64,000 nucleotides of DNA from IMG/VR virus record IMGVR_UViG_3300046660_000488, positions 1 to 64,000 of that record; one strand, written 5' to 3'. Both the position numbers and the translations under genes were made by a program. The notes beneath the pieces were generated by a model. It saw only the letters and a program-made list of their open reading frames with translations. It made no database searches and was not told where the DNA came from. This document shows positions 8,459 through 60,315 of the stretch, one piece after another; the stretch's first letter is position 1; every line of letters starts with the position of its first letter.

Positions 8459-10063
8459 ATGAAAAACCATTCCGCCTTGACCGCAGCCTTCGAAATGGAA
8501 GGTATCGATCCCGCGCTCGCGGTGCTCGTTCCCTGCGAAAAGCCCGATCTGGCCGATTTCCAGTGCAACGGCGCGTTCCTCGCCGCGCGCGACATGAAGA
8601 CGAACCCGCGCGCGCTGGCTCAGGCGGTTGTTGATCGCATGGGGGACGACCGGTTTTCGGTGGCCGGACCCGGCTACATCAACGTCAAGCTCACCCTCGA
8701 CGACCTCATCACGGCGCTGTTCGTGGACGAGAACGTCAGCGCCGCGCCCAAGAAAATCTACCTCGACTTTGGCGGCCCCAACGTGGCCAAGTCCATGCAC
8801 GTGGGCCACATGCGCTCGCTGTTCATCGGCGACGCCCTCCAGCGCATCCTACGGGCCGCCGGGCACACCGTGGTGTCGGACATCCATCTTGGTGATTGGG
8901 GCCTTCAAATGGGCCTGCTGACGGCCGCCCTGATGAAGACCACGCCGGAGTCCGAAATCACCCTGAAGATGCTGGAGGAAGCCTACCCGGCCGCCTCGCT
9001 TCGCGCCAAGGAAGACCCCGAGTTCAAGAAAGCCGCCCAACAGGCGACCCGGACTATTCAGAACCCGATGTGGGCGACCGAAGAGCGCTCTTTCTGGGAA
9101 GCGATGGTCCGGGTGTCGGTTGACGACATCAAGCGCCAGCTAAAGCGCCTCGGGATCGAGTTCACGCTGTTCCACGGCGAGAGCACCGTCGCCCGGCTGG
9201 TTCCCGGCATCGTCAAGCAGTTCGTCGATACGCTCATGGCCGTCGAGTCAGACGGCGCCATCGTCGTGCCATCGCTCAACGAGGATGAGCCGCCCATGAT
9301 CCTCCGCAATTCGGAGGGCGGATACCTCTACGCCGCCAGCGATCTGGTCACCATCTTCGAGCGGGCCAAGGACGAAGCCGACGAGATCATCTACGTCGTC
9401 GATCAGCGTCAGGCGTTGCACTTCAAACAACTGTTCGCGTTCGCGGAGAACATTTTCTCGGCCAAGCTGGTCCATGCCGGGTTCGGCACGGTCAACGGCC
9501 CGGACGGCAAGCCGCTGAAGACCCGCGACGGCGGCGTTCCCAAGCTGGACGATCTGGTCCACCAGACCTATCTGGCCGCGCACGCCAAGAACCCTGAGTC
9601 GATCACACGGTCGGAGCAGGTCGGTCTGGCGTGTCTGAAGTTTGGCGACCTGATGAACCCGCGCGAGTCGAGCTACAATTTCGACCCGGACAAGTTCACC
9701 GCCCACGAGGGTAAGACCGGCGCCTACCTTCTGTACCAGTGCGTGCGGATCAAGAGCATTCTGCGTGATCAGCCGGAAGATGACCTGTCGTTCGCCGAAG
9801 TCGCCAACGTCGGCGAGGAAGAACGCACGCTGGTGTTCAAGATGGCCTATGGCTTCACTCAAGCCATGGAGCGCGCCGTTACGCGCCTGTCGCCGAAAGA
9901 GATCGCCGATTACACCTACGATCTTGCACAGACGTTCTCCAAATACTACGCGCACAACCAGATCGCGGGTAATCGGGCGCGTCTTGCTCTGGCGAAGGGC
10001 GTTCACGACCGCCTTGTATACTGCCTCGACTTGCTTGGCATCCAAGTCCCCGACAAGATGTGA
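8459..10063 (+). CDS. argS: arginyl-tRNA synthetase
   Basis: ADFQCN, VAGPGYIN, PNVAKSMHVGHMRS (HIGH), GDWGLQMG, YVVDQRQ.LHF, KTRDGG, YLLYQCVRIKSIL. Confidence 0.96.
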   Translation: MKNHSALTAAFEMEGIDPALAVLVPCEKPDLADFQCNGAFLAARDMKTNPRALAQAVVDRMGDDRFSVAGPGYINVKLTLDDLITALFVDENVSAAPKKIYLDFGGPNVAKSMHVGHMRSLFIGDALQRILRAAGHTVVSDIHLGDWGLQMGLLTAALMKTTPESEITLKMLEEAYPAASLRAKEDPEFKKAAQQATRTIQNPMWATEERSFWEAMVRVSVDDIKRQLKRLGIEFTLFHGESTVARLVPGIVKQFVDTLMAVESDGAIVVPSLNEDEPPMILRNSEGGYLYAASDLVTIFERAKDEADEIIYVVDQRQALHFKQLFAFAENIFSAKLVHAGFGTVNGPDGKPLKTRDGGVPKLDDLVHQTYLAAHAKNPESITRSEQVGLACLKFGDLMNPRESSYNFDPDKFTAHEGKTGAYLLYQCVRIKSILRDQPEDDLSFAEVANVGEEERTLVFKMAYGFTQAMERAVTRLSPKEIADYTYDLAQTFSKYYAHNQIAGNRARLALAKGVHDRLVYCLDLLGIQVPDKM

Positions 10064-40940: not shown

Positions 40941-41171
40941 ATGAGCGAGGTCCACATCAACAAACGGGTGGCGATCTCGGCCTTGGCCCTCAAGGCGGGG
41001 ATCAAGCATCTGCACGACAACGGGTTCAACGGCGCGGATGAATTCAACATCCGCTCGACGACCTACCGCGTCTATTTCGTGGATTTTCTCCGCGAAACCA
41101 TCCAGTCTTCGGACATGCCGCCGGAGGCCATTCCGGTCCTCGAAGGCATGATCAGCGAACTGGTGCACTAA
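40941..41171 (+). CDS. hypothetical protein
   Basis: ORF in operon. Confidence 0.65.
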   Translation: MSEVHINKRVAISALALKAGIKHLHDNGFNGADEFNIRSTTYRVYFVDFLRETIQSSDMPPEAIPVLEGMISELVH

Positions 41172-41172
41172 C

Positions 41173-41505
41173 GTGGAAGACCGAACGCCCGAAGGCTACC
41201 TCGACTGGATGCGGGAATCCAACCCGAACATCGTCCACATCGAGTTGATCGACGACGAGCGCTGGGTGATGATCGAGCGCTTGATGTACCACTACACGAT
41301 CAAGACGGGCACGGTGAATGACTTCTTCACCGGCTACGAGGATCGCTGGTGCATCGCGAACCTCCAACGGGCGCTGATCTCGTTCGCAGAATGGAAGACC
41401 CGTGGCTTCGAAGGCGAGCCCACGCTGTGGCATCGTCATCCCAATTCCGGGCGGCGGCGTGATCAAGACAACCCGGTCGCAGCAACCGAACACATCGCGC
41501 AATAG
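41173..41505 (+). CDS. hypothetical protein
   Basis: ORF in operon (EP..WHRHP..GRRR). Confidence 0.7.
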   Translation: MEDRTPEGYLDWMRESNPNIVHIELIDDERWVMIERLMYHYTIKTGTVNDFFTGYEDRWCIANLQRALISFAEWKTRGFEGEPTLWHRHPNSGRRRDQDNPVAATEHIAQ

Positions 41506-41513
41506 GAGGTCCC

Positions 41514-41660
41514 ATGCTTTCGTCTCTACCAAAGCCCACTGAGGTTCCTCTGGCGACGTATCGTTTCTTCTTGCGGTTCTGGGGAGAGGTCGGCGATCTA
41601 CTAACGAAACCGTGGCCGAAAGCCAATGCGTGGTTCAATGCCAATGTCAAAGATGGCTAA
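41514..41660 (+). CDS. small hypothetical protein (48 aa)
   Basis: AGGAGG SD; fills the gap between neighbours. Confidence 0.55.
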   Translation: MLSSLPKPTEVPLATYRFFLRFWGEVGDLLTKPWPKANAWFNANVKDG

Positions 41661-41943
41661 GCGCAAAGTCTGGCGCCGTCGATCCACTAAGCCCAACACC
41701 GTCGCGGTCTACTATGGTCGCGACGATGATGGGGCGATTGGCTTAATCGGCGGATGGGGCGATGGAGCACGCAGGGGCGACGCGATGTTCCTGATGTGGG
41801 CGCTGGGCGAAGATCGCAACCGGCCGTCGTTCGAGACCTTCCCCGGCCTGAAGAAAGAACCGTCCATCCTCGCCGAGCTTGAGGCGAGAGGATACGACCT
41901 GACCACCCTGAAGATCAGCATCGAAAGGAAGCAAGAGCCATGA
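41653..41943 (+). CDS. hypothetical protein
   Basis: EL..RGYDLTTLK.SI motif. Confidence 0.65.
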   Translation: MAKRKVWRRRSTKPNTVAVYYGRDDDGAIGLIGGWGDGARRGDAMFLMWALGEDRNRPSFETFPGLKKEPSILAELEARGYDLTTLKISIERKQEP

Positions 41944-42125
41944 GCATCATCGCCGACCTCAAGAGCCTTCAGGCTGGTTTCGATAAAGAAACTCGTGACG
42001 CCATCACCGCCTCCAAGGCGCTGACCGGCGCCGCGCGCGACGATCAAATCCGCGCATCGGTCGCCGCCTTCCATAAATCGCAGGGCGTCGCCGCCGCGAT
42101 CACGCTCGTGGAAAATGCAGTCTGA
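41940..42125 (+). CDS. small hypothetical protein
   Basis: ATGA-coupled ORF. Confidence 0.6.
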   Translation: MSIIADLKSLQAGFDKETRDAITASKALTGAARDDQIRASVAAFHKSQGVAAAITLVENAV

Positions 42126-42136
42126 AAAATAAGTGG

Positions 42137-42166
42137 TTGACGAAAACGTCCCACTCAGGATAAATA
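42137..42166 (+). promoter_or_regulatory. promoter of the leader peptide/tRNA-Thr operon
   Basis: TTGACG at 42137-42142 and TAAATA at 42161-42166. Confidence 0.7.
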
Positions 42167-42171
42167 AGAAC

Positions 42172-42213
42172 ATGAACCGGATGACCACACGAACGACAAC
42201 CACCATCGCCTGA
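42172..42213 (+). CDS. Thr-rich leader peptide MNRMTTRTTTTIA (ThrL-like)
   Basis: 6 Thr codons within 7 consecutive codons; near-leaderless; directly upstream of three tRNA-Thr genes. Confidence 0.8.
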   Translation: MNRMTTRTTTTIA

Positions 42214-42261
42214 AGCGCATTCGCGCGCAGGTCTCGATGGTTATTGTGGGTTGTTTCTTGT

Positions 42262-42336
42262 GCCGGTGTAGCTCAGGGGTAGAGCGGAACTTTCGTAAAG
42301 TGATTGTCGGGGGTTCGATTCCCTCCTCCGGCACCA
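42262..42336 (+). tRNA. tRNA-Thr(CGT), atypical
   Basis: Cloverleaf with CCA; loop TT-CGT-AA; U-U in acceptor stem and only 3 Watson-Crick pairs in anticodon stem. Confidence 0.85.
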
Positions 42337-42359
42337 GAAACAACCCACATCCTTGTTCT

Positions 42360-42445
42360 GCCAACGTGGCTCAGTGGCGACAGCACCGGCTTTGTAAGCC
42401 GCCTCCGCAAGGACACCGTGGGTTCGAGTCCCACCGTTGGCTCCA
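42360..42445 (+). tRNA. tRNA-Thr(TGT) with long variable arm
   Basis: GCCAACG/CGTTGGC acceptor, loop TT-TGT-AA, variable hairpin TCC-GCAA-GGA, GTGGG-TTCGAGT-CCCAC, T-CCA. Confidence 0.9.
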
Positions 42446-42458
42446 ACTTTCTTGATAT

Positions 42459-42534
42459 GCTGGCGTGGCACAGTTGGTAGCGCGCTATACTCGTAATATA
42501 GAGGTCATCGGTTCGAATCCGGTCGCCAGCACCA
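42459..42534 (+). tRNA. tRNA-Thr(CGT)
   Basis: GCTGGCG/CGCCAGC acceptor, CTATA-CT-CGT-AA-TATAG, T-loop TTCGAAT, A-CCA. Confidence 0.93.
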
Positions 42535-42939
42535 TCAACTACTCTTTCCTTCAGCATAGCGCACACGCCTAATGTGGCGTCCATTCCCACGGTTCTTGTT
42601 CCGATACGTCGGCGTGAGCGAATGACAGTTGCAGCACAAAAGCCGCAGGTTGCTAAGCGCGTGATTGTCGGCGTTCCCATCCGCGTGGTCAACCTCGACA
42701 TCAACTGGGCGTTTTGTCTGATCCCAAACGCATTCCGGGTCCATGCAGATGTTACCATGCGTAACCAGCATGTATTTGCGTAGGGTCTGTGGATGAACTC
42801 TCACCCCGCTTTTGATTAGCTCGACCGTTGCAGACCACTTGTGTAAACCTTGGCAAGCATTATTACAATACTTACCGTGCGTGTTCTTTTGACGTATTTT
42901 CTCTGTGCCACACTGAAGGCACGTGAATGTTTCAGACAT
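42535..42939 (-). CDS. HNH endonuclease
   Basis: CxxC Zn motifs; VEVDHADGNADNH.LSNLRLLCCNCH. Confidence 0.9.
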   Translation of the reverse strand: MSETFTCLQCGTEKIRQKNTHGKYCNNACQGLHKWSATVELIKSGVRVHPQTLRKYMLVTHGNICMDPECVWDQTKRPVDVEVDHADGNADNHALSNLRLLCCNCHSLTPTYRNKNRGNGRHIRRVRYAEGKSS

Positions 42940-42978
42940 TCACAACTATAGTTCAGATGACTATTTTCCGTCGATTTG

Positions 42979-44067
42979 TTAGCGCGTCGGCGCCCGAACG
43001 CCCTTGTGGATGTCGCTGGCATCCTCGTCGTCGCCCGCCACGCTTTGGGTCGAAACCCGGAAGCTGTTGGCCTTTTCGACATCCCAGAGCACGAACGCCC
43101 GGTGCATGTGGCCACCCAGTCCACGAGGACCCGTGCCGCCCAGTCGCACGCCGCCTTGGTATTCGAGGCCGGTATAGCCAGCATTCAGCAGGTCTTGGAT
43201 CAGAAGCTGCTGGCGTTCCTTGTCTCTGAACACGAAGTAGCCTGAGTGCGTGCCGTTCCAGAAGAAATCCAGCGTCGGGTTCTCGCCCTTGCCGCCAAGC
43301 TGATGGTCGGTCCACGCATAATACGTGCCGTGTTTTTTGTAGCCTTCAATGAAGTCCCAGAACTTGTTCCCATTGCTGTCCGAACCGTAGTGACGCAGGT
43401 CGAACGGACGCTCTTCATCGCCCTTGGCGGCGCGCACGAACGCCTTGTAGACGATGGCAAGTTGATCGTCGGTCAACGGCCGCTCGGCGTGCATGGTGCG
43501 CTCCAGATAGTCGGCAGGGACCTCGAACGTGGTCACGACGCCGGGACGATCTGCCTTGGTCAGGACGAACTCGCCCGTGGTCAACTGGGTGACCCGGACC
43601 TTGCCCCTCAGCGCCTCGAAATCCTTCTTGGCCTTGCCGAACAGGTTCTGGAGAACCTTGCGTTGGCCAGCTTCGAACTCTCCCCGAAAATCGTCGCCAC
43701 GGGCTGCTTTCTCGGCAGGGTCCATGTTCCAGAACCGGCCGTTGGCGTCGGCGCGGTACTGCTGGAGCACCAGATCAAGCTCGTACTTCGTCTTCATGAC
43801 GTGGACGAGGTAGGATTGGATAAGGTCTTTCTTGGATCGGGCGCCTTCGCCCTGATCGGTGCGCTTGCGGAACAGGACGTTCTCGTCGGCCGCCTTGCTG
43901 GCGGTGTAATCTCGCGCGATGGACGGGCTGTCGGTCAAGTACAGGCCCATGCCCAGCAGGGCGTCATAATCGGTCTTGTCGATGTCGAACATTTCGATGG
44001 AGGATGCGTCGCCACGATACAGGGTGACTGTGCTTTTCTCTTCGAACAAGGCAATGAATTCGCGCAT
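42979..44067 (-). CDS. late internal-virion-like ART-fold protein
   Basis: TAAATA 4 nt before ATG; MREFIALFEE; LYRGD, G.GLYLTDS...A.DY, GYTGLEY. Confidence 0.7.
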   Translation of the reverse strand: MREFIALFEEKSTVTLYRGDASSIEMFDIDKTDYDALLGMGLYLTDSPSIARDYTASKAADENVLFRKRTDQGEGARSKKDLIQSYLVHVMKTKYELDLVLQQYRADANGRFWNMDPAEKAARGDDFRGEFEAGQRKVLQNLFGKAKKDFEALRGKVRVTQLTTGEFVLTKADRPGVVTTFEVPADYLERTMHAERPLTDDQLAIVYKAFVRAAKGDEERPFDLRHYGSDSNGNKFWDFIEGYKKHGTYYAWTDHQLGGKGENPTLDFFWNGTHSGYFVFRDKERQQLLIQDLLNAGYTGLEYQGGVRLGGTGPRGLGGHMHRAFVLWDVEKANSFRVSTQSVAGDDEDASDIHKGVRAPTR

Positions 44068-45253: not shown

Positions 45254-45476
45254 CGAACGCCTTGACGGCGCGCGCGAAACGCTCCGCGAAGGTTGGGCCT
45301 CGCGGAGGTTTCGGCACGGCGTTGAAGTTACTACCGCCGTTGGAGCCGCAGCACAGGTTGGTGCAGGTGATGTAGCCGTCCGAGCAATTCTCGTCCGCCA
45401 CTTCGGCGTCGGTCTCAAGCTCTTTCCGCATGCCGTCTTCACCGCAGATCGGACAGTTCACCCACACCCTCGTCAT
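45240..45476 (-). CDS. small Zn-ribbon protein
   Basis: CPIC ... CTNLCC. Confidence 0.65.
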   Translation of the reverse strand: MTRVWVNCPICGEDGMRKELETDAEVADENCSDGYITCTNLCCGSNGGSNFNAVPKPPRGPTFAERFARAVKAFAKAF

Positions 45477-47050
45477 TCGATCTCACCCTTCACGGCCCGG
45501 TTCAGCAGGTCGATGGTGTTCTGACGCCCGTAGGCGGCCGTGAACGACCCGAAGCGCGGACCCTGCTCGTCACCGAACAGAACCTCGTACAGGCTCTGGA
45601 ACCATGCCCGCAGGGGCTGGAAATCGTGAGCCTTGCCGACCTCGTAGACCTCGAATTGATAGGCCTCCGGGTCGAGCCCATCAGCCATCTTCTCGAACCG
45701 CTCGACCAGATCGAGGAAGGCCGTGGCCTCCTGTTCGGTCGGGGCGCGTCGCTGGCGATCCTGTAGCAGGATGTCGCGGGCATAGTTGATCGCCCCGTCG
45801 ATCAGAGGGGTCAGGAAGGCCAGATCACCGGCCGACAGCGCCTTGTACTGTCGCAGGTAGGCGATCAGGCTCTCACGATCCTTGGCGCCGGACACCACCG
45901 CCAGATTCAGCAGCAGGCCATAGGTCACGTCGCTGCTGTAAGGCGGCGGCGTATCCCCGTGGATGTGCCAGATCGGCGAGTCGAGCTTGGCCGCGCCGGT
46001 GAGAGCCGGATAGGCGACCAGCGCCTTCAGGTACTCGTCGGTGGCGCGCGGAACCGTCTTGGCCGTGAAAATCTTGGCCTCGCGCGGCTTCAGGAACATG
46101 AAGTAGGCCAGCGGCCCCGTGGTGCTGTAGCGGCTCCACGTCTCCATGCTCATGCCGTTGCCGGACGACTTCGATTGCTTGCGGCCCTCGTCGTCGAGGA
46201 ACAGTTCATAGGTGAACGTCATCGGAGGCTTGCCGCCGATGGCCTTGCAGATGCGCGACGACAGCACGGCGCTGTCCATCAAGTCCTTGCCGTGCATTTC
46301 GTAGTCCACGTCGAAGACGACCCAGCGAGCGGCCCAGTCCACCTTCCACTGAAGCTTGGCGGCGCCTCCGCGCACGTCGATCAGCATGTCCACGCCCGCG
46401 TCGAACGTCGAATCCTTGAAGAACAGGCCGCGTCCGGCGTCGCCGAAGTCCTCAGACGGTCGGACGCTGGCATCGGCCAGCAAGACGCCGGAGTAAGCCA
46501 GCGGCATGAAGGCCGAGTACGTCGCCTTGCGGGCGTCACGCAGGGTCGGGAGCATGATCGCCTGAACAGCGTCGTAGCTGAGCAAGACGCGCTGTAGCAC
46601 GTCGTCGAACACGCCGTTGCGATAGCACTCGGTCGCCGAAATTAACTCGACGTCCTCGAAGCCCGACTGCTCGATGAAAGCCTTCAGCGCCGCGTTGTTG
46701 CGGTGCGCGAAGCTCTCGTACTCACCGAAAGGATCGGGGACCATCGTCAGCGGCTTGCCGAGGTGTTCGGCCATGCTTTCGGGCATGCCGTCCGGAACCT
46801 TGCGGAAGCCGTCGTAGTCGTCGCTGAAGACGATGAGGCGCGTGGCGACCGTGCCGCCCGTCAACTCGATGAAGGCGTCGCGAACCATCTGGGTGCGCGT
46901 GACCTCGCCGAACGTGCCGATGTGCGGGGCGCCCGAAGGACCAAAGCCGGTCTGGAACGTGACCAGCTTCTTGTCACCGACACGCTTCAGCAGAGCACGA
47001 GCCTGCTCGAACGGCCACGACTTGGCGTTCTGCGCGTCAGGATTGGTCAT
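45473..47050 (-). CDS. class I lysyl-tRNA synthetase
   Basis: SWPFE.A, TGFGPSGAPHIGTFGEV.RT, SDD.DGFRKVP, KLQWKVDW..RW, DYEM.GKDL, KQSKSSGNG, GPRFGSF. Confidence 0.95.
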   Translation of the reverse strand: MTNPDAQNAKSWPFEQARALLKRVGDKKLVTFQTGFGPSGAPHIGTFGEVTRTQMVRDAFIELTGGTVATRLIVFSDDYDGFRKVPDGMPESMAEHLGKPLTMVPDPFGEYESFAHRNNAALKAFIEQSGFEDVELISATECYRNGVFDDVLQRVLLSYDAVQAIMLPTLRDARKATYSAFMPLAYSGVLLADASVRPSEDFGDAGRGLFFKDSTFDAGVDMLIDVRGGAAKLQWKVDWAARWVVFDVDYEMHGKDLMDSAVLSSRICKAIGGKPPMTFTYELFLDDEGRKQSKSSGNGMSMETWSRYSTTGPLAYFMFLKPREAKIFTAKTVPRATDEYLKALVAYPALTGAAKLDSPIWHIHGDTPPPYSSDVTYGLLLNLAVVSGAKDRESLIAYLRQYKALSAGDLAFLTPLIDGAINYARDILLQDRQRRAPTEQEATAFLDLVERFEKMADGLDPEAYQFEVYEVGKAHDFQPLRAWFQSLYEVLFGDEQGPRFGSFTAAYGRQNTIDLLNRAVKGEIE

Positions 47051-53649: not shown

Positions 53650-56600
53650 ATGACGACTCATTACTCCGGCCTTCAATTGCGCGGCAACTTGTTCATCAAC
53701 AAGGAACTGCAACCGGCTGTCGTTTGGGTTTCTCCTCTGCGTAAGGCTCTGGGTCCGTATGGCTCGGACCTTAATCCCAGCAAAGATGTTGACATCACGT
53801 TCGTCGCTCACGCAAGCGACCCGAACGCTGTGCTTGTCTATTCCGTCGTCGTGGGGGTTGTTCCGGACGGACTGACGCTCGATTCAGCAACCGGTAAGAT
53901 GGTTGGCACGCTGACCGCGTCCGAAGGTCTGGCCGAATTCACCGTGCGCGCCACGATCCAGAACACTCAACTGTTCGCCGAGCGCCACTTCCGCATGGTC
54001 ATCGGCAACGCCCCGCCGCCCGTCTGGATCACGCCCGCTGGCCTGATCGACGAAGTCGGTGAGAGCGAGACCTACACCACCACCCTGCTGGCCGAAGACC
54101 CCTACGAGCTTCCGGTCACCTATTTCCTCGTGGGCGGCTCCCTGCCGCCGGGCATGTTCCTCAACAGCACCACGGGCCAAATCTACGGTTCGACGCCCGA
54201 CCTCGACGATGACATGATCTGCGACTTCACGGTCTCGGCGTCGAACAACTCGCGCAACACCACGCGCGATTTCACGATCTACCTGACCGCCACGCCGCCC
54301 GGCGACGCGGCGTACTGGATCACGCCTGCCGGTGACGTGGGCGAAGGCTACGAACTGACTGAATTCACGTTCGACCATCTGGAAGCCATCGACCCGAACG
54401 CCCTGCCGATCACCTACGTCCGCGTCGCCGGTAACATTCCGGACGGCCTAATGGTCGATGCCAACAGCGGCGTGATCTACGGAACCATGGGTCCGCAGGC
54501 CGACGACACCCTGTTCAAGTTCATCATGGGCGCGCGCACGTCGGTCTACACGACCAAGCGCATGTTCACGATCATGGTCAAGCACGTCACGCCCCCGAGC
54601 TTCGGCGACGACAACCCGACACAGATCACGATGCGCGGTCTGGAGAACGAGGTGTTCTACAGCAACGCCGTGCACGCCACGAGCCCGACGCCGATCCCGA
54701 TCACCTACACGATCACGAACCTTCCGACCCCGCTGATCTTCAGCCCGTTCACGGCTGAAATCCACGGCATCATGCCGCCGGTCATCGAAGACGCCGACCA
54801 CATCTACAACATGGTCGTCACGGCCTCGAACGGCATCAAGTCAAAGAGCGTCACGGTCCAACTGACCGACGAGAAGAACCTGCCGCCGTATTTCACGGTC
54901 TCGGGATCGCTCGGCGAAGCGCTGGGCGGCAAGCCGTTCAACGCGCCTGTCCCGCTGGCCATCGACCCCAACGGCGTCCAGACCGTCTACACGCTGCTGA
55001 ACCCGGAAGACCTGCCGGAATCCATCACGTGGGACGCCAGCGTCGGCCTGCTCACGGGTACGTATCCGCCTGCCCCGACCGAAGACGTGATCACCACGTT
55101 CCAACTGCAAGTCTTCGACGGCGTGTTCACGACCAATGCGACGCTGACGATCACGTCGTGGCTGAACACGGAGCCGGAATGGATTACCGCACCGGGCCAG
55201 ATCGGCACGATCATCGAGAACCACAACGGATCGTTCGTGGTTGAAGCCCGCGATCCACAGAACGAGCCGATCATCTACTCTCGTGTCGGCGGCGCCTTCC
55301 CGCCGGGCATGGACATTGACCCGAACACGGGCGCGATCAGCGGCCCTGACGTCGGCCCGGTTCTCGATGTCGATTTCGACATCTACGACTTCGTCATCCG
55401 AGCCGACGATGGCGTGCTGTTCACCGACCGCGCCTTCCGCATCGTCGTGACCAAGGACTACCCGCCGATCTGGGACACGCAGCCGGGCGTCATCGTTGAC
55501 GTGCTCGCCGGTAAGCAATTCACCTTCCAGCTTGAGGCCCACGATCCGAACGGCACGACGCCGGTCTATTCGGTGATCGACGATGGCGGTCTTCCGATTG
55601 TCGATCCGACCACGCAACTTCTCTACGAAGAGAGCGGCGTGATCATCAACGGTCGCACCATCCGCGCCAAGATGCCCCAGCCGTCCAACCCGGCCGATGA
55701 GTCCGAAGACTTCAACCTCATCATGTCCATTGATGATGGCTACAACCCGCCGGTTGAGCGCACCTTCACGCTCCGGACCAACCGCAACACGCCGCCGGTT
55801 TGGAACACCAACATCTACGCCAGCAACTTCGTGGTCGTGCCGACCACGGCCAACATCGCCACCTATCAAATTGGCAACCCGCTGGTTAAGACCGAAACGT
55901 TGTCGAACGGCAACGTGGTCATCTACTCGCTGCTCGACCAGTACGAGACCGAAGTAATCGACCTCCAGCTTGGTGCTGACGATCCGCAGACCGGCGTGGA
56001 CAGCCTCTACTACTTCTACTCGGATTCGTCGTCCGTCTTCGAATTCAACGGCCAAGAGGGCGTTGGTGATGACGGCGTGCTGTTCATCAACCAGAACACC
56101 GGGCGCCTGACCGGCCGTGTCCCGACCGTGGATGCCGACAAGTTCTGGCACATCAACGTCACGGCTTACGACAAGACCGAAGTCTCGATGGAAAACCGCT
56201 ACTACGGCACGCCGCAGCGGTTCCTGCTCTCGACCCGCTTCAACAAGCCGCCGGAGTGGATCACCGCGCAGAACATCGGCCGCGTCGAACGTCTGGCCTA
56301 CACCCTGCAATTCAACGCGATCAACAAGGGCAACCTGCCGGAAATGCAGTACGTGCTGAACAGCGGCGTGCTCCCGGCCAACATGACCCTGACGAACACG
56401 GGCGTCCTGTCCACGACCCTGCCGCCTAACAAGACGGAAGCGGTCGAAGAGGACAAGACCTACACGTTCGCGGTCACGGCCAACAACGGCATCAAGCAGT
56501 CCACTAAGTCGTTCAACTTCACGGTCTACAAAAACCTCGAACCGGTGTGGGAACCCGCGACCCTCGAAGGTCTGGGCCAAATCCCGTTCACCGGCCAAAT

Positions 56601-59600
56601 CTCCGCGACCGATCCGAACCAAGGCTTCGGCGATCCTCTGGTTTACACCATCGTGGACCGCTCGCAGGTTCCGTCGTCGGTCAAGTTCAACATCGCCGAT
56701 CCGTTCGGCGCCTCGGTGGTGTCCTACCAGACGTTCGACGCCGACTATGTCGATTACAAGGATGCGGCCCAGTGGTCGTTCGTTGGCAACCCCGCGCTGG
56801 TTCCGGGCAAGTTTGGCAACGCCGTCAGCATGGATGGCACGAGCTACCTGACCGCCGAAGTGGGCGCTCTGGGTCAATCGCCGTTCACGTTCGAGACGTG
56901 GTTCAAGCGCGACGGTGGCGGTCCGGTGCAGCACCTGATCACGCTGGGTGATCTGGGTGAAAACGGCGTCAGCCTCTACCTCGACAACGGCGTTCTCAAG
57001 CTGGACGAAGACACGATCAACGTCCTGAACGGGACCGCGTCGATCTCCGACACCGCGTGGCATCACGTGGCGCTGGTCCGCGACGGCAACGACTACACGA
57101 TCTATCTGGACGGCGTCGTTGACGCGCAGATCACCATGCCGACCGTCGCGTCCCTCTCCGCGACGACGTTGCTGCTTGGCTCGTTCGGCATCACGCCGGA
57201 CACGCTGTTCACCGGCGCTCTGGATGATTTCCGCCTGACAGCCGCCGCTCGCTACACGCAGGCCTTCACGGCGCCGACCAAGGCGTTCGACCGCACGATC
57301 ACGGGAGTCATCACCGGCAACCTGCCGCTGGTGCAAGCCGACGCCTATTACCCGTTCGACGTCAGCGTCTCCGACAATCTCGTCAGCGTTCCGGCCTCGT
57401 TCACGATCCACAACATCCACGACCAAGACCCGATGTGGAGCACGCCCATGGGCCTGATCTACAGCAACTTGGAAGACACGCCGTTCACGTTGACTGTCGG
57501 CGCGGCCGATCCGGAAGCCAACCAAATCGCGTACTCGCTGTTCTCGGGGACCTTCCCGTTCACGCTGAACTCGGTCACGGGTGAGATTTCGGGCACGCTT
57601 CCGTCTGTCTCGACCGATACCGACTACGACTTCACCCTGCGCGCGTCGGATGGCATCCATATCTCGGATCGCAGTTTCCGCATCACGTCTGAAGACAACC
57701 TGCCGCCGGTCTGGGTGTCGTGCAGCACCACGATGGACATGCACGCTCTTGGTGGCGAGTTCTCGTCCTACCAGTTCGAGGCTACCGACCCGAACGGCCG
57801 TCCGACGCTGACCTACGCCATCACTGGTGGCACGACGCCTCCGGGCCTCAACTTCGGAACGGGTGGAGCCCTGACGGGCACGTTGAACACCGTTCAGGCC
57901 GACCAAGACTACACCTTCGACGTCACTGTTTCTGATGGCGTCTTCTTCGTGCCGCGCACGTTCACGTACCGCGCCCTGCTGAACCGCGCGCCGTATTACG
58001 TCCCGAACGCGACGACGATCCTGACCCAGTTCGAGCAGACGTTCATCGCCGATACGCTCGACCCTATCGACATCTACGACCCGGATGGTTCGGAACTGAC
58101 GATCCAAGTCCAGCCGCCGCAATTCCCGCTCCAGTACCACGTTGACAATGCGGGAACGGATCACGCGACTGTTTGGATCACGGGCGGTTCTCTGCCTGCC
58201 GTGATGACCGACACCACGTACCAGATGACAATTCTGGCCGACGATGGCGTCAACTTCCGCTCGCAGCAATACGCCTTCCGCGTCAAGTTCAACTCGCCGC
58301 CGTCGTTCACGTCGCCTGCAACGTTCCCTGACGCGGTCGAGCAGACTCCGTACTATGCCGTGGCCAACGCCGTCTCGAACGGCATGCCGGTGTTCTACGC
58401 CGTCGTCGGCGGAATGCTTCCTCCGGGCCTGACCCTGAACGTAGCCAACGGCGCGATCACGGGTACGGCGCCGCTCGTCGATGATGACCAGCAGTTCCCG
58501 TTCCAACTCCAAGCCACGACCGGCATCAAGGCGACTGTGCAGGACGCCGTCATCACGGTCCGCAAGAACCTGCCGCCGGTGTGGCTGACGACGACGCTCG
58601 CCAACGTGATGGAGAACACGGTCATCACGCCGTTCCAACTGGTGGCGACCGACCCGAACCATCAGGCGATCACCTACACGTGGCTGAGCGGCTTCCTGCC
58701 GCCGGGCCTGACGGCCAACTACGTCATCAACCCGAACACGGTGACCATCATCGGCAACACGCCGATCTTGGCCAACGACACGGTCTACAATTTCCGCGTC
58801 GGCGCGTCGGACGGCTACATCCGCACGGACCGCGATTTCGTCCTGACCGTGAAGTACAACCAGCCGCCGGTCTGGGTGACCAATGCTGGCCTGATCGCCA
58901 CGGTCAACGAACAAGACAGCCTCAGCAACCAGACGCGCGTCATCGCGACCGATCCGGAAGTGCAGGGCATCACCTACGCGATCCACAACACGGCTGCATG
59001 GCCGGGCTGGCTGACGCTGCAAACCAATGGCTTCCTGACTGGCACGGCGCCGCAGACCGCCAACGGTTTCACGACCGCTTTCGAGATCGACGCCAGCGAC
59101 GGCAACCGCTTCGTCACGCGCCAATTCTCGATCAACGTTCAGCACGTCGGCACACCGCCGACTTGGATCACGCCTGCTGGCCAAATTCTGGCTGGAGACG
59201 AAGGTAACTCGGCCGTCTTCACGCTGGTCGCCAACGACAATGTCTACCACGACACGGTGACCTACGCGCTGAACTCGACCGGGTTCCCGAGCACGATGAC
59301 GCTGCTGTCCAACGGCTACATCTACGGCACGTACCCGAGCATTTCGACGACGACCACGTACACCTTCGACGTGGCCGCAATCAACGTCTTGGCCGAAAAG
59401 CGTATTCGCCAATTCAGCATCACGTCGAACAACGTCGATTACCTGCAAGTCACCAGCCCGACCGGCGTCAATACGTACTATGGCAAGGGCGATGTCGTTC
59501 CGATGACGACAGAAGGCGAATGGACGGTTACCGTCCTGAAGCCTCTGAAGCTGAACGGCAAGCTCTGGGGCGCTGGCGGCGGCACGACCAACGGTGGCGC

Positions 59601-60315
59601 TGGCGGCTTCACGACGGGTGACACGGCTACCCTCACGACCGGAACGATCCTCCGGGCATGGGTCGGCGGCGGCGGCTTCGTCGGTAGCCCGACCCTTGGG
59701 CACGACGGTCCCTTCGGCAATGGCGGCAACTGCGGACGTCCCAACGGCGGTGGCATTTCTCTCGGCACGGGCGGTGGTCTCACCGGTCTGTTCCTAAGCT
59801 CCGTCTCGCAAGGCAACGCTCTGCTCGTCGCGGGCGCTGGCGGCGGCGGCGGCACGTCCGGTCCAGCGGCTGGCGCTGGTGGCGGCACGGTCGGCGCGAA
59901 GGGTAACGACTCCGGAAACGGTGGCGGCGGCTTCGGCGGCACGCAAACCAGTGGTGGTGCACGTGGTGGATCGTCCGGTTTCGACACCAACTCTCTGGGT
60001 GGTAGCGCGCTTACAGGTGGCCGTGGTGCGGCCAATATCTCGTCGATTTACTCACCCGGCGGCGGCGGTGCAGGTTACTGGGGTGGTGGCGCCGGTTACG
60101 GCAACAACCAATGGGGCGGCGCCGGTGGCGGTGGTTCGGGCTATCTGGCTGCGAGCATCACCAACGGTTCGCTCACGGCCGGTTCCGGTACGACGCCCGC
60201 TAACGCCAACGATAGTGACCGCCTTACCTACGCACCCAATGCCGGTAGCCCCGGCTTGTCGAACACGTCGAACTCACAAGCTCCGGCGGGTCTCATGGTC
60301 CTTCGGATTCTCTAA
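53650..60315 (+). CDS. giant virion structural protein (tail fibre/baseplate-like): tandem Ig/cadherin-like repeats, LamG domain, Gly-rich C-terminus
   Basis: TAAATA at 53616; repeats N..P.W.T..G ... A.DP ... Y....G.LP.G ... G.I.G ... F...A.DG ... R.F; FTFETWF...WHHVALVR...DDFR; WGAGGG Gly-rich tail. Confidence 0.9.
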   Translation: MTTHYSGLQLRGNLFINKELQPAVVWVSPLRKALGPYGSDLNPSKDVDITFVAHASDPNAVLVYSVVVGVVPDGLTLDSATGKMVGTLTASEGLAEFTVRATIQNTQLFAERHFRMVIGNAPPPVWITPAGLIDEVGESETYTTTLLAEDPYELPVTYFLVGGSLPPGMFLNSTTGQIYGSTPDLDDDMICDFTVSASNNSRNTTRDFTIYLTATPPGDAAYWITPAGDVGEGYELTEFTFDHLEAIDPNALPITYVRVAGNIPDGLMVDANSGVIYGTMGPQADDTLFKFIMGARTSVYTTKRMFTIMVKHVTPPSFGDDNPTQITMRGLENEVFYSNAVHATSPTPIPITYTITNLPTPLIFSPFTAEIHGIMPPVIEDADHIYNMVVTASNGIKSKSVTVQLTDEKNLPPYFTVSGSLGEALGGKPFNAPVPLAIDPNGVQTVYTLLNPEDLPESITWDASVGLLTGTYPPAPTEDVITTFQLQVFDGVFTTNATLTITSWLNTEPEWITAPGQIGTIIENHNGSFVVEARDPQNEPIIYSRVGGAFPPGMDIDPNTGAISGPDVGPVLDVDFDIYDFVIRADDGVLFTDRAFRIVVTKDYPPIWDTQPGVIVDVLAGKQFTFQLEAHDPNGTTPVYSVIDDGGLPIVDPTTQLLYEESGVIINGRTIRAKMPQPSNPADESEDFNLIMSIDDGYNPPVERTFTLRTNRNTPPVWNTNIYASNFVVVPTTANIATYQIGNPLVKTETLSNGNVVIYSLLDQYETEVIDLQLGADDPQTGVDSLYYFYSDSSSVFEFNGQEGVGDDGVLFINQNTGRLTGRVPTVDADKFWHINVTAYDKTEVSMENRYYGTPQRFLLSTRFNKPPEWITAQNIGRVERLAYTLQFNAINKGNLPEMQYVLNSGVLPANMTLTNTGVLSTTLPPNKTEAVEEDKTYTFAVTANNGIKQSTKSFNFTVYKNLEPVWEPATLEGLGQIPFTGQISATDPNQGFGDPLVYTIVDRSQVPSSVKFNIADPFGASVVSYQTFDADYVDYKDAAQWSFVGNPALVPGKFGNAVSMDGTSYLTAEVGALGQSPFTFETWFKRDGGGPVQHLITLGDLGENGVSLYLDNGVLKLDEDTINVLNGTASISDTAWHHVALVRDGNDYTIYLDGVVDAQITMPTVASLSATTLLLGSFGITPDTLFTGALDDFRLTAAARYTQAFTAPTKAFDRTITGVITGNLPLVQADAYYPFDVSVSDNLVSVPASFTIHNIHDQDPMWSTPMGLIYSNLEDTPFTLTVGAADPEANQIAYSLFSGTFPFTLNSVTGEISGTLPSVSTDTDYDFTLRASDGIHISDRSFRITSEDNLPPVWVSCSTTMDMHALGGEFSSYQFEATDPNGRPTLTYAITGGTTPPGLNFGTGGALTGTLNTVQADQDYTFDVTVSDGVFFVPRTFTYRALLNRAPYYVPNATTILTQFEQTFIADTLDPIDIYDPDGSELTIQVQPPQFPLQYHVDNAGTDHATVWITGGSLPAVMTDTTYQMTILADDGVNFRSQQYAFRVKFNSPPSFTSPATFPDAVEQTPYYAVANAVSNGMPVFYAVVGGMLPPGLTLNVANGAITGTAPLVDDDQQFPFQLQATTGIKATVQDAVITVRKNLPPVWLTTTLANVMENTVITPFQLVATDPNHQAITYTWLSGFLPPGLTANYVINPNTVTIIGNTPILANDTVYNFRVGASDGYIRTDRDFVLTVKYNQPPVWVTNAGLIATVNEQDSLSNQTRVIATDPEVQGITYAIHNTAAWPGWLTLQTNGFLTGTAPQTANGFTTAFEIDASDGNRFVTRQFSINVQHVGTPPTWITPAGQILAGDEGNSAVFTLVANDNVYHDTVTYALNSTGFPSTMTLLSNGYIYGTYPSISTTTTYTFDVAAINVLAEKRIRQFSITSNNVDYLQVTSPTGVNTYYGKGDVVPMTTEGEWTVTVLKPLKLNGKLWGAGGGTTNGGAGGFTTGDTATLTTGTILRAWVGGGGFVGSPTLGHDGPFGNGGNCGRPNGGGISLGTGGGLTGLFLSSVSQGNALLVAGAGGGGGTSGPAAGAGGGTVGAKGNDSGNGGGGFGGTQTSGGARGGSSGFDTNSLGGSALTGGRGAANISSIYSPGGGGAGYWGGGAGYGNNQWGGAGGGGSGYLAASITNGSLTAGSGTTPANANDSDRLTYAPNAGSPGLSNTSNSQAPAGLMVLRIL

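Follow-up and report, generated by a model that had tools for sequence, protein, structure and literature searches.

Short translated leaders that sense the supply of charged tRNA are known from ribosome-mediated attenuators of amino-acid operons (thrL of thrABC, also trpL, hisL, leuL, pheL and ilvL), in which an ORF just after the promoter carries a run of codons for the sensed amino acid, rare ones included, and has its stop codon in a hairpin. In the pheST attenuator of E. coli, the pheM leader peptide, rich in the cognate amino acid, appears to serve the same purpose for a synthetase. T-box riboswitches sense the charging state of a specific tRNA and control translation-related genes by antitermination, but bind uncharged tRNA directly, without translation, through a specifier codon and a conserved T-box sequence; in tnaC/Rho-dependent attenuation and in pyrBI-type coupling attenuators, a ribosome on a short leader ORF physically masks a termination signal. 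The locus analyzed here, in a window of 64,000 nucleotides (positions 1 to 64,000 of IMG/VR record IMGVR_UViG_3300046660_000488) of a 578-kb phage genome, places a 13-codon ORF made mostly of threonine codons between a promoter-like site and three threonine tRNA genes. Comparable cognate ORFs precede other tRNA clusters in this phage and in unrelated large phages. Thus, these phages probably make tRNAs on demand, through a control for which no earlier description was found in the literature searched.

All of the features of the locus lie on the + strand. The promoter-like site consists of the -35-like hexamer TTGACG at 42137-42142, within a module, AAGTGGTTGACGA, that is shared with a leader preceding Arg tRNAs elsewhere in the genome, and a -10-like element; of the overlapping possibilities TAAATA (42161-66) and ATAAAT (42160-65), the latter is preferred and gives a 17-nt spacer. 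A σ70 promoter scan does not list this site, which fits the alpha-proteobacterial consensus better than that of E. coli. Only 22 sites of this promoter type occur in the 578-kb genome, and 11 of them precede tRNA clusters. The leader ORF, MNRMTTRTTTTIA, starts at ATG 42172, 5 nt after TAAATA and 6 nt after the preferred -10, and ends with TGA at 42211-13 (ORF with stop, 42172-42213), 48 nt before the first tRNA gene. There is no Shine-Dalgarno sequence at normal spacing, and the transcript probably starts at or next to the A of the ATG, making the mRNA leaderless: this start site is inferred from the spacing, which the Arg leader shares (TTGACG-N17-CTAAAT-N6-ATG). Other ORFs of this phage also start 6 nt after the same promoter type, and leaderless mRNAs are common and well translated in alpha-proteobacteria (PMC4117421). 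An in-frame GTG at 42133 would extend the ORF across the promoter. Six of the seven codons at 42184-42204 (ACC ACA CGA ACG ACA ACC ACC) specify Thr. ACA, which accounts for 4% of Thr codons in the phage ORFs but 2 of 6 here, is read by the UGU tRNA of the cluster, and ACG by its CGU tRNAs; half of the Thr codons (ACC), however, are read by a tRNA encoded elsewhere in the genome.

The codon run is also the C-rich 5' strand (A) of a compound leader hairpin. Its upper part, at 42202-42241, pairs ACCATCG (42202-08) with CGATGGT (42235-41) around CCTG/CAGG (42209-12/42228-31) and GCGC/GCGC (42215-18/42223-26), with the stop codon in the 5' arm; RNAfold reproduces this hairpin at -20.7 kcal/mol. A stop codon within a hairpin recurs in the Arg2, Gly/Glu/Asp and Arg/Leu/Met/Lys/Trp leaders and in phage CcrRogue. 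This is the pairing recognized in the sequence-only reading, but it is only the upper part of a larger structure. The G/U-rich strand B (42244-42261), which ends in the U-rich tract TTGTTTCTTGT just before the first tRNA, pairs weakly with A as a lower leader stem (A:B duplex, -13.3 kcal/mol) or perfectly with strand C (AGAAACAACCCACA, 42336-42349; B:C duplex, -23.2 kcal/mol), a 14-nt complement in the tRNA 3' trailer that extends the acceptor stem of the first tRNA to about 24 bp (inverted repeat of 27 nt, 89%). At least 12 other tRNAs of the genome have the same kind of flanking stem; the B:C stem is accordingly a general, processing-type feature of this phage's tRNAs and not a dedicated attenuator part. 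The tail of B resembles the terminator tails of this genome (GGGGTTTTTCTTT) but is weak by classical criteria, by our own estimate: the U-tract is interrupted and the stem next to it is weak and rich in G-U pairs. A terminator scan does not list it, and a canonical intrinsic terminator at the Thr locus is not supported, in agreement with the sequence-only reading. ARAGORN and Rfam both identify the three tRNA-Thr genes: CGU at 42262-42336 (75 nt, CCA encoded, 53 bits), UGU at 42360-42445 (86 nt, with an insertion generating an unusually long variable arm, 53.7 bits) and CGU at 42459-42534 (76 nt, 63.7 bits). An independent Logan contig from the source run covers 41600-43000 with no differences at depth 180, and the DNA reads show no variants.

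Taken alone, the Thr run is only modestly unlikely. Windows with Thr in 6 of 7 codons occur 12 times in the six-frame translation of the 578-kb genome, and an unbiased scan yields p = 0.027 for this locus; moreover, an A/C-rich strand that pairs with a G/U-rich strand yields Thr codons in one frame out of three. The Thr leader is, however, one of six in the same genome, each with an amino-acid and codon content that mirrors the tRNA cluster behind it. The cluster Ser-Ser-Ser-Cys-Tyr-Tyr-His is preceded by SSHSYCYSSSYHS, in which 13 of 13 residues are Ser, His, Tyr or Cys, a window that is unique in the six-frame translation. A 24-tRNA cluster (Ile/Val/Gln/Met/Pro/Asn/Ala/Phe/Thr) is preceded by a 46-codon ORF in which 37 of 39 residues belong to that set, also unique. 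Arg/Leu/Met/Lys/Trp is preceded by MTRRLATLRLKTLRLLKW, Gly/Glu/Asp by a Gly/Asp/Glu-rich ORF, and Arg(UCU)/Arg(CCU) by MNIRANNVLRRRR, a twin of the Thr leader in its promoter and start module and hairpin layout. In a leader-by-cluster matrix, every leader is most enriched for the amino acids of its own cluster, and 5 of 11 clusters reach p <= 0.027 in the unbiased scan, which misses the Arg mini-leader (p = 0.2) because its run is only four codons long. The match extends to codon level, and the leaders contain codons that are rare in this genome and are read by the downstream tRNAs. AGA (2%) and AGG (3%) both occur only in the leader before tRNA-Arg UCU/CCU, whereas the other Arg leader uses only CGN codons, before GCG/ACG/CCG tRNAs; all four Pro codons, and both Lys and both Gln codons, are used before the matching isoacceptors.

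Three leaders in this genome are followed by strong terminators, and in the Ile/Val/Gln leader a 10-nt segment of the ORF is complementary to the 5' arm of the terminator. Equilibrium constraint folding did not reproduce a switch for these three classical attenuators, because their terminators are very stable; only a kinetic argument remains. Two unrelated huge phages, LR756502 and LR756501 (642-735 kb), have the same cognate leaders, each with a textbook terminator and an ORF-internal antiterminator. In phiCbK-like phages of Caulobacter and Brevundimonas (CcrRogue and six other Dolichocephalovirinae), a leader with the consensus MSKTYRQFVRQIQVVR.. is conserved before Tyr/Val/Ile/Gln/Asn/Arg/Phe tRNAs, together with its antiterminator-terminator pairing, in which matching changes occur on both sides. 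A 40-kb piece of Agrobacterium phage Atu_ph07, in contrast, showed no cognate leaders. The comparison of short upstream ORFs with tRNA identity that the sequence-only reading had proposed as a check thus came out positive, and its core claim, that a leader peptide senses cognate tRNA and controls tRNA supply, is supported at class level by sequence evidence.

No relative carrying the Thr cassette itself was found. Protein-based scans of viral contigs with the upstream 105-aa gene and with LysRS found only remote or unrelated contigs without tRNA-Thr; an exact pattern of the first tRNA found unrelated phages, and a pattern built from the promoter and start module gave 0 hits. Searches of GenBank phages with blastn and tblastn matched only tRNA bodies, or nothing. 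Homologues of the downstream 374-aa gene lie on 200-415-kb metagenome contigs at about 40% identity, but next to ArgRS and with no tRNAs nearby, and the neighboring 858-aa and 386-aa genes have no homologues. An exhaustive HMMER search with the 105-aa gene found a 57% relative whose contig lacks the cassette; the best syntenic relative, here called L046, joins the two flanking genes directly and has no tRNA.

A mechanism is proposed, held with a probability of about 0.65 in the absence of transcript, ribosome or tRNA data for this phage: the 13-codon ORF is a translated sensor of charged tRNA-Thr that gates expression of the three tRNA-Thr genes behind it. Host RNA polymerase would start at the alpha-proteobacterial-type promoter, probably right at the AUG, and a ribosome would read the run of six Thr codons. 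If charged tRNA-Thr is plentiful, the ribosome finishes and leaves, A pairs with B, and a long hairpin (-30 kcal/mol) ending in the U-rich tract closes, lowering output by weak termination and/or by locking the tRNA 5' leader. If the ribosome stalls on the Thr codons, A stays covered, the hairpin cannot close, polymerase runs on, and B is free to form the 14-bp processing stem with C. The result would be negative feedback, with tRNA-Thr supplied when decoding of Thr codons is slow; translation, the direction of the response and the output step are inferred. At equilibrium B prefers C whatever the ribosome does, so any switch must be kinetic, and constraint folding shows that a ribosome at the stop codon would also open the hairpin.

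Other readings of the locus are less probable. The ORF might be incidental, the region being an untranslated structured 5' leader of the tRNA precursor (a processing or stability hairpin) whose A/C-rich strand, needed to pair with B, happens to read as Thr codons. The lack of a Shine-Dalgarno sequence, the modest p value, the eleven other Thr 6-of-7 windows with no tRNA nearby and the generality of the flanking stems are consistent with this, as is the existence of several clusters (Cys-Cys-Ala, Val, the CUA suppressors) with the same promoter type and no leader ORF. It is nonetheless unlikely: the Arg twin has the same promoter, the same ATG AAC start, the same 13-codon length and a cognate run containing AGA and AGG, yet no A/C-rich composition; four more cognate leaders stand in the same genome, and others in three further phage groups; and ATG and an in-frame stop bracket the run exactly. 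That the 13-residue peptide is itself the functional product, next to the tRNAs by coincidence, is a remote possibility. Small phage peptides exist and the ORF has a proper start and stop, but the peptide is low in complexity, the six leaders differ in sequence while each matches its own cluster, and in phiCbK-like phages the conserved positions are the cognate residues and the RNA pairing segment.

Two further alternatives retain translation of the leader. In one, output is Rho-dependent, a possibility raised in the sequence-only reading, and works as in the tna operon: the C-rich, G-poor codon run (42183-42210; about 13 C and 3 G in 27 nt) would be a Rho loading site that a stalled ribosome masks, Rho otherwise terminating within or before the tRNA array. 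The absence of a canonical intrinsic terminator favors this notion, but it is doubtful, since the free C-rich stretch is short (about 30 nt) and is followed by a stable hairpin and highly structured tRNAs, the Arg twin with the same layout is not C-rich, and the other leaders of the class use intrinsic terminators. In the other, the polarity is reversed, with tight ribosome-polymerase coupling opening the hairpin, as in pyrBI, so that stalling on Thr codons lowers tRNA output, or the element simply ties tRNA synthesis to general translation capacity. The ORF does overlap the 5' arm of the hairpin, a ribosome anywhere on it opens the structure, and a ribosome stalled early (codons 5-6) would leave the upper hairpin free. 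This is also improbable: it would generate positive feedback, with less tRNA when tRNA is short, it does not explain why the codons are cognate and include rare ones read by the cluster's tRNAs, and the classical members of the class have the standard arrangement, with the antiterminator downstream of the cognate run and covered by a ribosome at the stop codon.

Why phages carry tRNAs is an open question, for which codon-usage mismatch, loss of host tRNAs late in infection and escape from anticodon nucleases have been proposed as reasons. Somewhat more likely than not, large phages regulate their tRNA clusters with "barcode" leader peptides whose codons list the isoacceptors encoded downstream, each cluster being transcribed only when decoding of its own codons is slow; such a demand-driven feedback would be widespread, spanning this rhizosphere phage, the two huge phages and the phiCbK-like phages, among them the cultured phage phiCbK on Caulobacter crescentus. 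The Thr and Arg mini-leaders would be a compact variant, apparently leaderless and without a canonical terminator, acting on tRNA 5' processing or on a weak terminator through a hairpin built from the cognate codons themselves. If so, phage tRNA supply is a regulated homeostat and not a constitutive add-on, and the leaders say which codons the phage monitors. To our knowledge this would be the first case of leader-peptide attenuation that controls tRNA genes, and of leaders that integrate up to nine amino acids at once; it also offers natural parts for circuits that respond to tRNA levels.

Comparison with the described systems places these elements as follows. Like the amino-acid operon attenuators, most members of the class found here (three in this genome, and those in LR756501, LR756502 and the phiCbK group) have an antiterminator inside the ORF and an intrinsic terminator before the regulated genes, but those genes are phage tRNA genes and not biosynthetic genes, so that the product sensed, charged tRNA, is the direct product of the regulated genes, and many of the leaders are multi-amino-acid and list the whole tRNA cluster. 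There is no sequence homology: a covariance-model search at E <= 1 over 41000-44000 finds only tRNAs and chance hits, with no match to Rfam Thr_leader or another leader family, and the other leader loci likewise give only tRNAs. The pheST attenuator probably differs in being cellular, in sensing a single amino acid and in having a clear terminator. No T-box match was found in the same searches, the 48-nt spacer is too short for a T-box, and the signal here is an ORF with many cognate codons. The tnaC and pyrBI systems are a possible model for the terminator-less Thr and Arg mini-leaders, although no evidence for a rut site or for nucleotide-sensitive pausing was obtained. Finally, the B:C complementarity resembles the RNase III processing stems that flank rRNAs and some phage RNAs; cleavage is not shown, and at the Thr locus one strand of the stem is also the partner of the codon run, which links processing to translation of the leader.

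The first 64 kb analyzed here belong to a single 578,292-bp contig with 59% G+C, assembled from a rhizosphere metagenome. It is a very large phage, carrying 69 tRNA genes and encoding within the window an HNH endonuclease, a class I lysyl-tRNA synthetase and an arginyl-tRNA synthetase (45473-47050 on the minus strand and 8459-10063 on the plus strand), an ART-PolyVal protein, ribonucleotide reductase and large Ig/laminin-G proteins. One of these, a 2221-residue protein (53650-60315, plus strand) with seven He_PIG Ig-like domains, a laminin-G domain and an ALK/LTK glycine-rich domain, is probably a fibre or adhesin. The segment at 1-25 kb is syntenic with 200-415-kb metagenome contigs at about 40% protein identity. 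Every statement about the sequence made in the sequence-only reading, which had proposed a threonine-sensing leader peptide in front of a phage tRNA-Thr array, is correct. TTGACG lies at 42137 and is followed by an A/T-rich -10 element (ATAAAT, 42160-65); an ATG at 42172 opens the ORF MNRMTTRTTTTIA, with its stop codon at 42211-13; ACCATCG and CGATGGT pair around an inner hairpin that holds the stop codon. Three tRNA-Thr genes follow, with anticodons CGU, UGU and CGU, called by both ARAGORN and Rfam. A contig made by a different assembler from the source run matches 41600-43000 without a difference.

Taken alone, the case against chance is modest. Windows with Thr in 6 of 7 codons occur 12 times in the six-frame translation of the genome, and an unbiased scan, which finds for each tRNA cluster the best short-ORF window within 400 nt upstream that is enriched for the cluster's amino acids and compares it with random pieces of the genome, gives p = 0.027 for the Thr locus. 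The decisive result came from the comparison that the sequence-only reading had proposed, of short-ORF composition with the identity of the tRNAs downstream, carried out inside this genome. The tRNAs are grouped by amino acid, and other clusters are also preceded by short ORFs that spell their content. The Ser-Ser-Ser-Cys-Tyr-Tyr-His cluster is preceded by an ORF containing SSHSYCYSSSYHS, all 13 residues of which belong to the cluster's four amino acids; a cluster of 24 tRNAs (Ile, Val, Gln, Met, Pro, Asn, Ala, Phe, Thr) is preceded by a 46-codon ORF in which 37 of the first 39 residues belong to those nine amino acids. Both of these windows are unique among about 1.16 million codon positions. 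Arg3-Leu6-Met-Lys4-Trp2 is preceded by MTRRLATLRLKTLRLLKW.., Gly/Glu/Asp by a 47-codon ORF with a Gly/Asp/Glu-rich core, and Arg(UCU)/Arg(CCU) by MNIRANNVLRRRR. In a leader-by-cluster matrix each leader is most enriched for its own cluster's set, and five of 11 clusters reach p <= 0.027 in the scan. In contrast, Cys-Cys-Ala, Val, the two CUA-anticodon tRNAs and His/Ser have no leader and serve as internal negatives. The two CUA-anticodon (amber-suppressor type) tRNAs (genome positions 109999-110155, minus strand) stand behind their own promoter; TAG is the rarest stop codon of long ORFs in this phage, at 38 of 206. Between the two tRNA-Trp genes, a hydrophobic short ORF (genome positions 508038-508265, minus strand) begins MALIFAILVLAGFGFWWMATW.. 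and has four Trp in about 50 codons; it could be a Trp leader or a small membrane protein. A HisRS-like catalytic-core gene (genome positions 104690-106165, plus strand) lies between two tRNA-His genes, appears split between two reading frames and lacks an anticodon-binding domain.

The match extends to the level of codons. ACA makes up 4% of Thr codons in 206 long ORFs of the phage but 2 of the 6 Thr codons of the Thr leader, which precedes tRNA-Thr(UGU). AGA and AGG, at 2% and 3% of Arg codons, both appear in the four-codon Arg run before tRNA-Arg(UCU) and (CCU), whereas CGN codons, which account for the remaining Arg codons, are the only Arg codons in the other Arg-containing leader, before tRNA-Arg GCG/ACG/CCG. 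The large leaders use all four Pro codons, both Lys and both Gln codons, and most Ser and Leu codon types, before the matching isoacceptors. This pattern is frame-specific, and we can explain it only by translation, which is itself inferred. Some of the tRNAs themselves (42360-42445 in the window and genome positions 104252, 508664, 508998, 516221 and 516932) have switched class: long-variable-arm versions (85-90 nt) of Thr(UGU), Lys(UUU), Lys(CUU), Gln, Asn and Cys stand beside normal-length isoacceptors, and there are short (78-nt) Leu tRNAs. The same is seen in the huge phages LR756501 and LR756502 and in phiCbK-like phages, where tRNA-Lys is 87-91 nt.

Only 22 sites in the genome fit TTGACN-N16-18 followed by a CTAAAT/ATAAAT-type -10, and 11 of them precede tRNA clusters. 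The Thr and Arg(UCU) leaders share an almost identical module: AAGTGGTTGACGA, N17, TAAATA, four nt, then CATGAAC. In both, the ATG begins 6 nt after the -10, so that the mRNA, whose start site is inferred, is probably leaderless. ORFs of 52 and 165 codons start at the same distance from the same promoter type. Leaderless mRNAs are frequent in alpha-proteobacteria, with 375 in C. crescentus and 171 in S. meliloti, and in C. crescentus they are translated as well as leadered ones (PMC4117421).

Three leaders of this genome, those of the Ser/Cys/Tyr/His, Arg/Leu/Met/Lys/Trp and Ile/Val/Gln clusters, are followed by strong terminators with tails such as GGGGTTTTTCTTT. In the last of these a 10-nt segment near the end of the ORF is complementary to the terminator's 5' arm, which is the classical attenuator layout. 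The Thr and Arg mini-leaders differ: the cognate codons themselves form the 5' arm of a hairpin, the stop codon lies in the inner hairpin, and the hairpin closes 3-5 nt before the tRNA. At the Thr locus the upper hairpin is -20.7 kcal/mol; with the lower stem, which is rich in G-U pairs, it reaches -30 kcal/mol. The tract that follows, TTGTTTCTTGT, resembles the genome's terminator tails, although it is interrupted and is not reported by the terminator scan; the Arg twin has no U-tract at all. The 3' strand of the lower stem (B, 42244-61) is also perfectly complementary over 14 nt to the trailer of the first tRNA (C, 42336-49), extending the acceptor stem to about 24 bp. B:C is stronger than the pairing of B with the codon run (A), at -23.2 against -13.3 kcal/mol, and it wins in the full fold. 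Such flanking stems surround at least 12 other tRNAs of the genome (e.g., at genome positions 103933, 104363, 123323, 511254, 515552 and 516030), so that at least 13 of the 69 tRNAs have 9-14 bp of complementarity between the 5' and 3' flanks, extending the acceptor stem, including the encoded CCA, with duplex energies of -17 to -37 kcal/mol. This looks like a processing stem, and it would block RNase P until cut. B:C is therefore a general processing-type feature that the Thr leader taps into rather than a dedicated attenuator part. Constraint folding shows that a ribosome anywhere on the mini-ORF opens the hairpin.

The same design is found in two unrelated huge phages of about 34% G+C, LR756502 and LR756501. 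There, the cluster Arg-Ser-Arg has the leader window ..SSRSRSS.., Asn-Asn-Leu-Val-Ile-Thr.. has ..NLNMNLNTLTVVNNTL.., Trp-His-His-Phe-Lys-Ser has ..SKHSKHFSSSSKWF.. and Pro/Asp/Gln has ..DQDQPD... Each of these ORFs is followed by a textbook terminator, and in most of them the 3' part of the ORF carries 6-12 nt complementary to the terminator's 5' arm. The cultured Caulobacter phage CcrRogue has two such leaders, one of which is conserved in phiCbK, RB23, CcrSC, CcrColossus and the Brevundimonas phages Kikimora and Bajun. Its consensus is MSKTYRQFVRQIQVVRxNRAGRS, and it stands in front of Tyr/Val/Ile/Gln/Asn/Arg/Phe tRNAs. The DNA alignment shows a conserved promoter, an ATG about 7 nt after the -10, an ORF-internal CGGGCGGGCC facing the terminator AAGGCCCGCC..GGCGGGCCTTTT, and matching substitutions in CcrSC and Bajun. 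The GenBank records of phiCbK (1509-1670 of its sequence L040) and CcrColossus (1948-2101 of its sequence L043) annotate only a predicted rho-independent terminator upstream of the tRNA cluster, and not the conserved cognate leader ORF in front of it. A 40-kb piece of Agrobacterium phage Atu_ph07 showed nothing of the kind.

No relative carrying the Thr cassette was found. The closest syntenic contig (L046) has a 57% identical upstream gene and joins that gene directly to the ART-PolyVal gene, whereas in the window 2.6 kb lie between them: a 61-codon ORF, the leader, the three tRNAs, the HNH gene and a 374-codon gene. The HNH endonuclease gene (42535-42939, minus strand) ends directly against the 3' end of the third tRNA-Thr. 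Together these facts suggest that the tRNA-Thr cassette lies in a variable, possibly mobile, spot.

The Thr ORF is most likely a translated sensor of charged tRNA-Thr (with a probability of about 0.65, in the absence of expression data for this phage). For the classical members the logic is the standard one: a stall on cognate codons leaves the antiterminator free, and transcription reads through. For the Thr leader we favor the following: a stalled ribosome keeps the codon run (A) away from B, so that the leader hairpin does not close; this prevents weak termination at the U-rich tract and frees B to form the processing stem with C, whereas a ribosome that finishes and leaves allows the hairpin to form. 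The argument is a kinetic one, and it does not resolve which of these outputs dominates. Among the alternatives, an untranslated structural leader is unlikely, though it is the least improbable of them; reverse polarity or general coupling, and Rho-dependent attenuation, are each more doubtful still, and a functional peptide is very improbable.

No earlier description of leader peptides in front of phage tRNA genes was found in the literature that could be searched. As read here, the element works like the attenuators of amino-acid operons, and most like pheST/pheM, which appears likewise to regulate a component of translation. It is not a member of any Rfam leader family or of the T-box family. 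It differs from the known attenuators in that the regulated genes are phage tRNAs and in that many of the leaders encode several amino acids; the Thr and Arg leaders, in addition, probably start at the first base of the transcript and have no canonical terminator.
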